63,651 bases of DNA, filler included, from Choristocarpus tenellus KU-1152 (GCA_964200185.2; 10 parts of 10 records of this genome joined end to end with filler, not necessarily neighbours in it), one strand, 5' to 3'. Counted from the whole stretch's first letter, positions 56,677-61,510 are shown. Notes: a model not told the origin generated them from the letters alone. Numbers and translations are program-made.

Positions 56677-59130
56677 CTCAAGTTTGACTCCGTCCATGGG
56701 ACATGGTGAGAGCAACGATGACACTTAGCGTTGACTCTACTATGTGTCACGACCACTAGTACCTGCATGCTCTGTCTTCGACATTGGTGATGGTTCTAGA
56801 CTTGTTTACGTGGTATCTGTGGCGTGTCTCCCCTACCAAAGGCTGATAGGTCTGATCACATTTTCCACTGCATCAGTTTTAGCTCGGATACTTTTGACTT
56901 ATTTGCAACCCATCGATCTCCAAACAAATATTGCGCAGGGGTCCAGAGGTAGAGTACGAAGGGGCAAAAGACTCTATCGTCGTTGACGGCAAAAGTATCG
57001 CTGTCACAACAAACACTGAGATCGCTGACACGGACTGGTCTGGACATGGTATTGATATGGTCTGCTGCTGCACGGTAGGTGACGGGGAATGGACCGGATA
57101 AGAGGTGTTCAACGTTCACTTGAACTGGATCTAATAGAATGAGCACAAGCATTGGGATTGATGAATGGCTCTAGTTGTTGCTAAACGTTATAGGGTGGAA
57201 CACACTCATTCCTCCAGCATAATCTAGGCTGTGAGTTAGCTTTGAAGTGTTGTCCTGTTTCCTTGTGTTGTGTTGTTCCTCTCCGCCATTAAATTCGACT
57301 TCAGGGGGAGTAAAAAGGCTCGACAAACCTCAGTAAATGCGTGAGTGTTTTCTACAAAATGCAGACTTCGTCCATCTCTCCAGTTATTGCGTATTACTCT
57401 CCATATTAGTCTGAGGAATTATCCTATCCTTTCTTCAAATACACTAAACACCGCATTACTTCATAAAATAGCAATAACTGTAACTAACTTTTGTGTCATA
57501 CCCAGGTGTGATACCGGGGTATCTTTGTATTTCAGGATGCAATTGGTGCGTTTCAGTTATTGATATGGAATTCAACGCAATAGGAACTTGTGGTGTAGTG
57601 AATGGATATGAGTGAAAGTATCTTAGAGGGTACGAGTTTTTCCCTGTTTGTCCATTTGGGATTTGACTTCCCACGGGGTTTTTGTGACATTTTACCTACT
57701 CCGAAATGTTCAGAGTAGGTAAAATGTATACGTTATGAAAAGGGTGTGTCCAGAACAAAGATATTGATATCTCCTAACAAACACAATAGCCAAAATTACA
57801 TCAAAATCACAACATTGGATTATGGTCCCCAATCGGATGCGACTCTACCCTCTAAGATACTTTGACTCATGGCCCCCTCGAACAAAGTACTTCCCAATTC
57901 TCCAACAAACAAGATGGTATCAGAGCACAGGATCCATCACTCAACATTGCCACATTCTGTATACAAAGTATTCAGGCAGCTTTGGCCCCTTTTGAGCATT
58001 TGTTCTCATTGGTGAATGCTCAGACTACTGGGTTATTGTGGATTGGACACACTACACTTACAGAACTCTGCAAAGCAAACTCAAGACTTCTACTGTTCAA
58101 CCATGATCTAGAAATGAGTGAAAGTATCTTAGAGGGTACGAGCTTTTCCCTGTTTTTCCATTTGGTCTTGGCTTCCCATGGGTTTTTTAAATGACATCTT
58201 TCCTACTCTGAAATATTTCTGAGTAGGTAAAATGTGTAAGTTATGAAAAGGTGTGTCCGGAACAAGGATATTGATATCTCCTAACAAATATGATAGCCAA
58301 AATCAATCAAAATCACAACGTTGGATTTTGGTCCTCAAATGAATGTTTCAGAATAGGTCAAATGTATACGATATGAAAAGGTGTGTCCAGATCAAGGATA
58401 TTGACACTTCCCTAACAAACACAACAGTTAAAATTTCATCAAAACATCAACATTGGCTTTTGGTCCCCAAATGGACACGTCTCTTCCCTCTAAGATACCT
58501 TGGCCCTGTAGTGGTCCTACTACTAGTAGGAATATACCTTGTCTCTTGTTGTCACAAATGTCACACCAAGTACAGATCTTGTTGGTGTGTTCGATAGTCC
58601 CTTATTTTTGTGATTTTGCTGTTGTTTGTTGCATTCTGTCTGTTACGTTTCTTCTTACAAGATTCTTCCTACGGTTACGCCTCTTGTTTGGTTGTGTTTC
58701 CTCTGCCTCGTTACATTTTTTCATTTTATCAAAGTTCAACCACTGCAAAGGTATCAGGAAATGAGTTACAAGTGCAGTTGGTAATTTTTTATGTCAAGAA
58801 AAATATTTGTATTGTGTTAGACTCTGCTCTGTGGTATGCCGCAGCGAGCAAAACAATTAATACAAAAGTGCCTAGACCAAGTTGATATATGAATGTCCTA
58901 GAGACAGCCCAACCACAAAGAAAGCCATTCAAAGAACATGTATCGTGTAACCACTCATTGCACTAACCCTTTCCCGGATCTCTCTCTCTCTCTCTCATGT
59001 TTTGCACCCGCAAATCCCTGTGACAATTGACAATGAAAATGAGCAGGGAAAATTCCTCACCAAGGAAAAGCTTCAACCATACTTTGATGGAGGTGTTCAG
59101 AGGGTAGTAGTGTCTGCCCCAGTGAAGGAG
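56677..59130 (+). CDS. Partial glyceraldehyde-3-phosphate dehydrogenase, ArsJ-associated/Gap3 type (3 exons: 56677-56705, 56939-57074, 59047-59130)
   Basis: Spliced translation LKFDSVHGTWGPEVEYEGAKDSIVVDGKSIAVTTNTEIADTDWSGHGIDMVCCCTGKFLTKEKLQPYFDGGVQRVVVSAPVKE. Canonical GT-AG introns with phases 2 and 0. Matches the GAPDH NAD-binding domain; FDSVHGxW, IADTDWS, LQPYFD and APVKE are typical of the arsenate-associated subgroup. Both ends are cut by contig limits. Confidence 0.88.
57610..57868. mobile_element. MITE family A in GAPDH intron
   Basis: Full TIRs. Confidence 0.9.
58116..58506. mobile_element. MITE family A with internal duplication, in GAPDH intron
   Basis: Segment of ~58225-58340 repeated at ~58350-58475. 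Confidence 0.85.
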
Positions 59131-61510
59131 GTGAGGAAACATTACCATTGTCCCTTCCTTGCGTGTGCCTGTAAATGTGTTGTCTTTTGGGTGGATATAT
59201 TGTTGAGAAAAAAATTCCTGTAACTGTTTCTTTTTTTATCATCTGGGGGGTACTACAAGTGCGAGAGAGGGGAAGGGCGTTTTGTGTCCCGTGTCCTTTC
59301 TGGAAGGATAGCTATGCCGTTTCAGTACCGTGGAAGTGAATTTTGAAGTCATAAAGTCAGGAAAATGGTAGTACTGTGGAAGCAACCGACGGCAGAACGT
59401 AGTTTTGACAACATACCTGTCAGCAGTGTATGCACGTGTTGGTGATATACCTTTACAATGCCGTACTGAATAACAGATATCCCCCAATGTATTGGTTGCA
59501 GCTACTCAAATCATTTTGCCCTCGAGAATTGTAACACTGCCCAACTATTATCCAGTCATCTTTACTCCCTGTTGAGCAACGCCTGCCAGGTTACTACTGT
59601 TCTGTATTCTTGTTTTGTTGAAGAGGCGAATGTGATTCGATGATAAAATGCAAGGGACAAACCTTCACTCTTGTTTGCTGTGGATGAAATATCAACTTCT
59701 CCTGTGGCTTCACCTTTCGAAATGCCGTAGCTATCTGTAACCCCCTTCTTTAAAACCATCGCTTACGACATCATTCTAAGAGAGGTTATTTATAAACAGT
59801 GCAACTGATGAGTTGGAATTGGTTGCTGTACTAGGAGCTCTTGTTTTATACAGACGTTGTAGGAAGAAAAAGTGTCTCCTGTATGATAATAGTGGTTGTG
59901 TGGACAGCAGCGCAATTTGTTCTACTTCATGGCTTCAACATGCCCTTCTTCTCTTCACCCCCCCCCCCCCCCCCCCCCCCCCCCCCACCCCCCCCCCCCC
60001 CTCCCCACCGCCCACCCNNNNNNNNNNNNNNNNNNNNNNNNNNNNNNNNNNNNNNNNNNNNTTAATTAATTAANNNNNNNNNNNNNNNNNNNNNNNNNNN
60101 NNNNNNNNNNNNNNNNNCCATACATATTTTACCGGAACTGTCCGATAGAGTTGGAAGAGTCCAATCGAACACCTGTGCCCATGTAGGCGTATTGAGAGCT
60201 ACCCAACAAGAAATCAAGGGTAATCGCGGCGAAACAGATTGAGTCTACCTACTATCCTGTCATGGCATCTCTCCAGCATTTTGTTCCTGAGCTCCTTATT
60301 TGTAGAAAACTTGTTGCTGGATAGACATGATCGATGAACCCTTTGCATGCTGCCTTCAACAATGTGGTAAAGGTATAAATGAGGCCACTAATTGTACTGT
60401 TGTCCAGCAAGAACACGTTCGACAAAAGATATGGTGTTACTGGAAGTAAAGGAAAAGAGGTATAGTAACACAAAACCAGGTTCACAACTAGCATTACACA
60501 GGAACACTAAGGCCACGGACACAATCTAGAACTTCTCCCAACCATTGAACGGAGCTCTGAGATAGCCATCTTATGCCACAAAAGGGAGGCGTTCATGACT
60601 CCAAGGGAGGACTACGGTCTATTTGAGGAACATTTGCACAAGTGCTTTTTGTGAGGGTTGGGGAATGTCATTGTTCTAGCTTGCAGTCACATGCATATGA
60701 TGAATCTCTACTTCCCATACAAGATACATTCCAAGTGTACTCAAATTGATAATAAATCGTATTGGCTAGGTCTGAAGCCTTCATACACAGCGCATACGAT
60801 ATAGGTCAAACTTAGTTGCCTCGAAATTGGCCTTGAAATCGCTTCAAAATCACATGCACAACACCCCAACCCAGCTTCAAGCTCAATACATACCATGCTG
60901 TGTATGACAAGGAAGTCATACTTACTTACTCCTCCTCTTTTGTGTTGGCGGTCGAGCAGTACATGCCTCAATAGAATCCTCAACCCTCAACGCTTGTTTT
61001 AGTGCCTTCAGAAAATGGAAAACTCGTTTGAGGTGCATAATAGGTCTATGGCCCGCAAACCCAAGTGCTGCACCCCGACATAGTTTTCCTAAACCATGGA
61101 GAAAAGGAGAGAAAATGGATCAACAGTCTACCTCGAGGGAATGCCAACCTGGCATAGCTAATGCGTTCATACCTGTGCATCAACAGTGGCAGGGGGATGA
61201 TTGTGCTTGTCGACATTTGCTAGGTATCCTAATTGTACCTTTTGACCCTTGTCCTTGTGGATCAGACTTCATAGTTATTTTTTATGAAGTGTCGCTTGGG
61301 CCTTGACCACTAGAGATACAGAGTGTCTGTGAGGGGAGGTGGGGAGGGAGGGTAGGGGTACGGAATTTTTTGTTTGTTTGGGTACTCCTTCTTTCAAACG
61401 TGTGTGACGTGGTAGGTTGGGGCAGGGGTGGTGTGGACATCTGTTGTATATTCTGTGTTGTGTATGTGTATGTGTATGTGTGTTGTTACTATTTTTGATT
61501 CTGATACAAG

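Follow-up and report, generated by a model that had tools for sequence, protein, structure and literature searches.

A partial, intron-split gene in Choristocarpus tenellus predicted to encode a GAPDH of the ArsJ-associated bacterial clade

The DNA described here lies in a window of 63,651 nucleotides, filler included, in which ten parts of the records of the Choristocarpus tenellus KU-1152 genome (GCA_964200185.2) are joined end to end; the stretch analysed is the plus strand of positions 56677-60017. It contains part of a gene that we predict to encode a glyceraldehyde-3-phosphate dehydrogenase (GAPDH) of the bacterial clade associated with ArsJ. Three coding segments can be read directly from the sequence, all on the plus strand, with one frame kept throughout and GT-AG borders at every junction. 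The first piece (56677-56705) is truncated by the edge of the stretch and encodes LKFDSVHGT and stops two bases into a Trp codon, giving LKFDSVHGTW when the split codon is included. It is followed by a phase 2 intron of 233 nt (56706-56938, GT...AG) that sits within the Trp codon, with its donor G/GTGAGA at 56705/56706 (the slash marks the border) and its acceptor ...GCGCAG/ ending at 56938. Exon 2 (56939-57074) supplies the third base of the Trp codon and 45 further codons (GPEVEY...IADTDWSGHGIDMVCCCT), and its translation is GPEVEYEGAKDSIVVDGKSIAVTTNTEIADTDWSGHGIDMVCCCT. Intron 2 (57075-59046, GT...AG, phase 0) is 1972 nt long, with the donor ACG/GTAGGT at 57074/57075 and the acceptor GAGCAG/ ending at 59046. 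Exon 3 (59047-59130) adds 28 codons, GKFLTKEKLQPYFDGGVQRVVVSAPVKE, and its donor GAG/GTGAGG at 59130/59131 opens a third intron beginning GTGAGG, whose start (59131-60017) occupies the remainder of the stretch and runs into poly-C at the end.

The 83 codons contain no stops or frameshifts, and all of the splice signals are canonical. Comparison of two ArsJ-linked bacterial GAPDHs with the stretch by tblastn returns the same three segments, colinear and at query residues 46-55, ~61-91 and 97-128, with no other credible match in the stretch; over residues 46-55 the first segment is 80-90% identical to ArsJ-linked bacterial GAPDHs. Together the segments cover residues ~46-128 of ~335-340, so that roughly one quarter of a GAPDH gene is present in the stretch. 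No exon 4 is present in the 887 nt that follow exon 3, even when the next-exon peptides of orthologs are used as queries at E ≤ 100. The first-pass annotation of this DNA, made from the sequence alone, had described three exons spliced in frame, and their translations are exactly as it gave them, the tblastn searches having recovered the same three independently.

Intron 2 holds two copies of a repeat resembling miniature inverted-repeat transposable elements (MITEs), of ~260-390 bp and with 25-nt terminal inverted repeats (ATGAGTGAAAGTATCTTAGAGGGTA) that are 96% complementary. Copy 1 (57610-57868) is ~259 bp long, with 25-nt terminal inverted repeats and AT/AT flanks; copy 2 (58116-58506) is ~390 bp long, contains a ~130-bp internal duplication and is degenerate at its right end. 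Depth was measured by placing contigs from two of the organism's DNA runs on the stretch. Over the unique parts, including the exons, depth is even at 17.6x and ~10x in the two runs, whereas the repeats reach summed depths of 1e5-1e6: copy 1 has a summed contig depth of 5.6e5-1.2e6 against 17.6 on its flanks, its edges appearing in the contigs as loose ends at 57609/57610 and joints from 57868-57870, and copy 2 has 3e4-4e5. More than 22,000 contigs of one DNA run align on the repeat. With summed depths so far above 17.6x, the family must be very abundant in the host genome, and it is among the host's most abundant repeats. The MITEs that had been reported in these introns are thus real. Two simpler sequence features also occur in the introns. 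A (CT)n microsatellite at 58978-58998, ~50 nt 5' of the exon 3 acceptor, may belong to the polypyrimidine region of intron 2. The poly-C tract occupies 59960-60017, and poly-C or poly-G also ends related Logan contigs (positions 1-35 and 2580-2596 of L001); these ends are probably short-read assembly break points and not biology.

Family assignment was done exon by exon, with scores summed over exons. Among NCBIfam models, exon 2 scores 21.1 bits on PRK08955 and 20.2 on G3PDH_Arsen, compared with 14.1 on GAPDH-I, 14.5 on PRK15425 and 12.6 on PRK07403, and it reaches at most 14.5 bits on the generic, E. coli-type, Bacillus-type and cyanobacterial-type GAPDH models. Exon 3 scores 28.8 bits on G3PDH_Arsen, 25.0 on PRK08955 and 15.0 on GAPDH-I, and is not matched by PRK15425 or PRK07403 in the NCBIfam scan; we take these last two to be class models of the GapC type and the Gap2/GapA type, respectively. 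As for the wider family of type I phosphorylating GAPDHs (PF00044/PF02800, TIGR01534), the NAD-binding domain is recognised in exon 2, which matches Pfam Gp_dh_N with E=5.4e-6 and 27.1 bits over profile positions 57-95, a score below the 31.7-bit whole-protein cut-off because the exon was scored as a fragment. The best PDB matches of exon 2 are GAPDH chains. A complete ortholog of nine exons, L004, described below, has summed scores of 368.5 bits on G3PDH_Arsen, 344.7 on PRK08955 and 263.4 on GAPDH-I, followed by PRK07729 (217.3), PRK07403 (200.6) and the E. coli-type PRK15425 (150.5). The arsJ-adjacent GAPDH of Pseudohongiella scores highly on both leading models, with 623 bits on PRK08955 and 560 on G3PDH_Arsen, so these two models overlap and do not describe separate clades.

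Bacterial counterparts were sought by scanning 185,579 bacterial and archaeal genomes, one per species, with the exon 2 patterns N[TE][EK]IADTD and [GE]ID[MV]VCCC. Only two loci were confirmed, in Pseudohongiella and Thiothrix, and in each the GAPDH gene is directly followed by a gene for MFS_ArsJ (627 and 590 bits). These two loci and annotated plasmid records make up a reference panel of 15 type I GAPDHs, seven of them ArsJ-linked and eight other; arsJ lies immediately downstream in six of the seven and is not listed in the plasmid record of Pseudomonas shirazica. When per-exon tblastn scores are summed, the window exons reach 73-97 bits with six of the seven ArsJ-linked references (51 with that of Bosea) and 17-67 bits with the eight others, and the corresponding values for L004 are 346-409 (Bosea 305) and 189-316. 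In an alignment with every exon as its own row beside the 15 references, HGxW is present in 7/7 of the ArsJ-linked references and 0/8 of the other type I enzymes, which read HGRF or similar, and APV[K/T] has the same distribution (7/7 and 0/8), the others reading APSKD or similar. IADTDW is found in three of the four gammaproteobacterial ArsJ-linked references (the fourth has IVDTDW) and in none of the remainder. The window exons have HGTW, LQPYFDGGV and APVKE. Taken as a prediction from these profiles, scores and motifs, the assignment of the window gene to the ArsJ-associated bacterial clade, and not to GapC or GapA/B, holds. The same assignment had been made in the first-pass annotation; G3PDH_Arsen (NF033735) or PRK08955 is the best model for each exon, the reference panel and motifs agree with it, HGxW and APV[K/T] behave as the clade markers that it had taken such motifs to be, and the grouping with GapC or GapA that would have contradicted it is not seen, PRK15425 and PRK07403 scoring lower both on the exons and on L004.

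As a separate observation on the panel, ~2.1 kb without a listed gene follows the ArsJ-associated GAPDH in the ars operon of the Pseudomonas shirazica plasmid (L009; CP075568.1, 4005-6170) at the expected site of arsJ. That arsJ may be broken or merely unlisted, the PLSDB gene table omitting pseudogenes.

Relatives of the window gene in other assemblies were sought with an exon 2 word search followed by a full HMMER search. Nine open reading frame fragments (P0001-P0009) were recovered, each forming its own 50% cluster, and all of them read through the same donor after VCCCT (CDC in P0009). The ortholog contigs have the same exon borders as the window gene, and L004 has the same phase 2 split of the Trp codon (ACTTG/GTGAGAG). 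For exon 2, identity is 58-72% to four of the five orthologs that were located, the closest being L001, and 51% to L006; exon 3 is 82-93% identical to L004, L005, L006 and L024, at saturated synonymous sites. Proportions of differing sites against the five orthologs (Nei-Gojobori, counted per exon with counts summed) are 0.66-0.98 for synonymous sites (pS), which is saturated, and 0.03-0.30 for nonsynonymous sites (pN). The gene is under strong purifying selection across deep divergence. An exon 2 profile search returned no full-length eukaryotic protein, a result that is silent on brown-algal annotation since 50% clusters may have bacterial representatives. The introns with their host repeats, the intron positions common to orthologs and the purifying selection support the earlier proposal of a domesticated bacterial-type gene, that is, a host nuclear gene with spliceosomal introns at the predicted junctions.

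An unusual feature of the coding sequence is the run of Cys-Cys-Cys-Thr codons at 57063-57074, at the end of a strand of the NAD domain, in which the three cysteines have been kept. The eukaryote copies read VCCCTG (with CDC in P0009), as against I/V-E/D-A/C-S/T-G in the bacterial ArsJ-linked enzymes. Vicinal thiols bind As(III).

The complete ortholog L004 is part of a Logan contig of 53.5 kb (SRR23272286_4759), of which positions 1-50018 were walked. Its nine exons lie at L004 6649-13080 (~9.6-16 kb of the contig), from a start ATG, preceded by an in-frame stop 15 codons before it, to a TGA immediately after the last GAPDH exon, and include the catalytic exon with SCTTNC, TTVH and the Gp_dh_C exons. 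With its own ATG, catalytic exon and TGA it therefore encodes a stand-alone protein of ~335-340 aa, in which no fused domain and no evident targeting extension were found. The suggestion that the novelty might lie in a new domain architecture thus finds no backing in this relative, whose gene is a plain GAPDH. Its neighbours on the contig are genes for an RWP-RK protein, ~2.5 kb from the GAPDH gene, UVSSA, a WW-GT7 glycosyltransferase and DNA polymerase alpha subunit B (DPOA2).

The named sequences closest to the WW-GT7 reading frame are from Hapterophycus, Laminaria, Scytosiphon, Ectocarpus and Choristocarpus, followed by other stramenopiles. Five called genes, GT7-UVSSA-(two small genes)-RWP-RK, occur in the same order and orientation in Scytosiphon promiscuus (L004, L007, L022 and L023 of SRR23272286_4759 compared with L025 and L026 of CAXNAJ020000981.1), with RWP-RK identities of 96% over 56 residues and 51% over 396 residues and 82% identity in a UVSSA exon. 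Given this conserved gene order and these identities, the relative is a brown alga or very close kin. Two ESM Atlas queries did not help to place the lineage; an animal origin, considered because one of them matched animal DPOA2 fragments, was rejected in view of the RWP-RK exon (29.1 bits) and the brown-algal synteny. On the Scytosiphon contig the next gene toward the expected GAPDH site is a spliced model of 1164 aa. The host of the window gene is, on sequence grounds, probably also a brown alga or close kin; the seaweed host that had been envisaged is thus plausible, a relative with the complete ortholog being syntenic with Scytosiphon promiscuus, but this falls short of proof.

Bacterial GAPDH and ArsJ together give resistance to arsenate by way of 1-arseno-3-phosphoglycerate (Chen et al. 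2016, as cited in PMC7826186). Green algae strictly have either both GAPDH3 and ArsJ or neither, and mutants of Chlamydomonas in arsJ and in pgk3 are sensitive to arsenate (PMC7826186). Among the genes called in 50 kb of the relative's contig, none belongs to the MFS or PGK Pfam families, and there is no ArsJ match in 20 kb of the Scytosiphon contig. A word search for eukaryotic ArsJ exon fragments, with a conserved ArsJ block of 69 aa, gave 1180 matches; among the 120 listed most are unrelated high-identity metagenomic MFS fragments and the named ones are bacterial, which speaks neither for nor against an ArsJ in eukaryotes. The putative arsenic role rests on homology and precedent.

We consider it probable that the window holds part of a single-copy nuclear gene for a stand-alone NAD-type phosphorylating GAPDH of the ArsJ-linked bacterial clade, an equivalent of the green-algal GAPDH3, with an arsenic role suggested by homology. 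Such a gene would have been taken up from a bacterium in ancient times, would later have gained spliceosomal introns at positions common to several divergent relatives (one or more of them a brown alga or very close kin), and would since have been kept under purifying selection. If the enzyme acts as its homologs do, it would use arsenate instead of phosphate when acting on glyceraldehyde 3-phosphate, yielding 1-arseno-3-phosphoglycerate, which might be exported by an ArsJ-like MFS permease whose gene lies elsewhere in the genome. Several points weigh against this reading. The catalytic Cys/His region (Cys149/His176) lies beyond the stretch, in which only 83 of ~335 codons are present. The 368.5 bits summed for L004 are below the NF033735 whole-protein cut-off of 450, fragment sums understating the true score. 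ArsJ is absent from tblastn searches (E ≤ 0.1-1) of positions 1-50018 of the relative's contig, so the tight GAPDH-ArsJ linkage of bacteria and green algae, which the first-pass annotation had proposed to look for, is lacking in the relative. Moreover, any phosphorylating GAPDH can use arsenate, and subfamily membership alone is accordingly no proof of a dedicated arsenic role. Participation in an As(V) efflux system is plausible on homology, though the linkage does not support it.

The absence of ArsJ within 50 kb is also what would be expected if the enzyme were a bacterial-derived isozyme now working in ordinary carbon metabolism (cytosolic glycolysis or gluconeogenesis), its tie to ArsJ having been lost after transfer. 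This explanation is possible but rather unlikely. It draws further on the unrelated neighbours (RWP-RK, UVSSA, WW-GT7 and DPOA2) and on L004, which has a standard catalytic core and no targeting extension, and strong purifying selection suits any essential function; yet GAPDH3 and ArsJ are kept or lost strictly together in green algae (PMC7826186), and here the diagnostic residues of the ArsJ clade have been kept after long divergence. A further point against it is that carbon metabolism in stramenopiles is already served by several GapC-type isozymes. The long introns raise a different question, namely whether the C. tenellus copy is a decaying or partial one, a pseudogene with introns swollen by repeats. 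Intron 2 is 1972 nt compared with 413-841 nt at the same position in orthologs, and the 887 nt downstream of exon 3 lack exon 4, whereas intron 3 is ~200-550 nt in two relatives. Against this, the 83 codons are intact and six splice signals canonical, pN to the orthologs is as low as it is among the orthologs, exon 3 has retained 82-93% identity, and the stretch merely ends where it does, a contig of one DNA run extending ~5 kb upstream; we regard a pseudogene as very improbable. Bacterial contamination, or a misassembled bacterial fragment, would account for the nearest full-length relatives being bacterial, but its chance is vanishingly small and it is already refuted by the intron structure: GT-AG introns with a very high-copy host repeat split the coding sequence, depth matches that of the unique flanks in two DNA runs, and identical intron positions are seen in assemblies made independently from other eukaryotes.

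A stand-alone ars-type GAPDH, the reading we prefer, can be set beside several known systems. The best family for each exon is the bacterial ArsJ-associated GAPDH (NF033735), which includes the ars-operon GAPDH of Pseudomonas aeruginosa (Chen et al. 2016). Identity to three of the four gammaproteobacterial ArsJ-linked enzymes is ~55-57% over the high-scoring segment pairs of L004 and 63-68% over the window exons, and for the ArsJ-linked GAPDH of Pseudoalteromonas it is 42.5%, over longer segment pairs. The gene has HGxW, IADTDW, LQxYxDxGV and APVKE in common with the bacterial ArsJ-associated enzymes but differs in being nuclear, with many introns, in the lack of an adjacent arsJ in the relative examined, and in the VCCCTG of all eukaryote copies, where the bacterial enzymes have IE[A/C][S/T]G. 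NCBIfam NF006512 (PRK08955) scores close to NF033735 on every exon, and the two are inseparable on 83 residues; PRK08955 also captures arsJ-adjacent enzymes and is thus not a marker of separate function. The green-algal GAPDH3 (Foflonker and Blaby-Haas 2020, PMC7826186) represents the same concept, a bacterial ars-type GAPDH domesticated in an algal nucleus and distinct from GAPC/Cp and GAPA/B. The genes for ArsJ, GAPDH3 and PGK3/4 adjoin in green algae, with mutant support (PMC7826186), whereas here, in 50 kb of the relative's contig, no ArsJ was found and no called gene has a PGK Pfam family, and the lineage is apparently that of a brown alga or other stramenopile and not of a green alga. 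Similar chemistry is proposed for Pteris vittata GAPC1 and OCT4 (Cai et al. 2019, as cited in PMC7826186), in which a GAPDH arsenylates glyceraldehyde 3-phosphate and a transporter removes the product; as described there, GAPC1 is a plant GapC-type enzyme recruited by convergence, unlike the bacterial ars type seen here.

The kind of gene, its bacterial origin and the proposed chemistry have already been published for green algae, whose GAPDH3-ArsJ-PGK clusters also bear out the remark in the first-pass annotation that similar genes are known in some algae (PMC7826186). In Cyanidiales arsJ alone has been reported (PMC9812998), and the literature searched contains no paper tying ArsJ or an ArsJ-type GAPDH to brown algae or diatoms. 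What is new is probably the lineage, together with the lack of ArsJ linkage in the relative and the conserved VCCCTG. The gain is modest because the gene kind, bacterial origin and likely chemistry have been described before. We suggest tentatively, as a possibility that the present data favour less than its alternatives, that brown algae and their close kin possess an ancient, intron-rich, ArsJ-unlinked GAPDH of the ArsJ clade, with motifs nearest to the gammaproteobacterial enzymes and a lineage-specific Cys-Cys-Cys.

If this suggestion is correct, it would imply acquisition or retention of an ars-type GAPDH outside the green lineage, and the enzyme could supply arsenate to the unusual arsenic metabolism of brown seaweeds along a path other than simple ArsJ efflux.

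Brown seaweeds accumulate much arsenic, and it is understood only in part how they deal with the arsenate that enters via phosphate uptake. An ars-type GAPDH maintained under selection would be a concrete, testable candidate for the first step of arsenate handling in this lineage. It would also carry the GAPDH3/ArsJ story of the green algae to a second major algal group.

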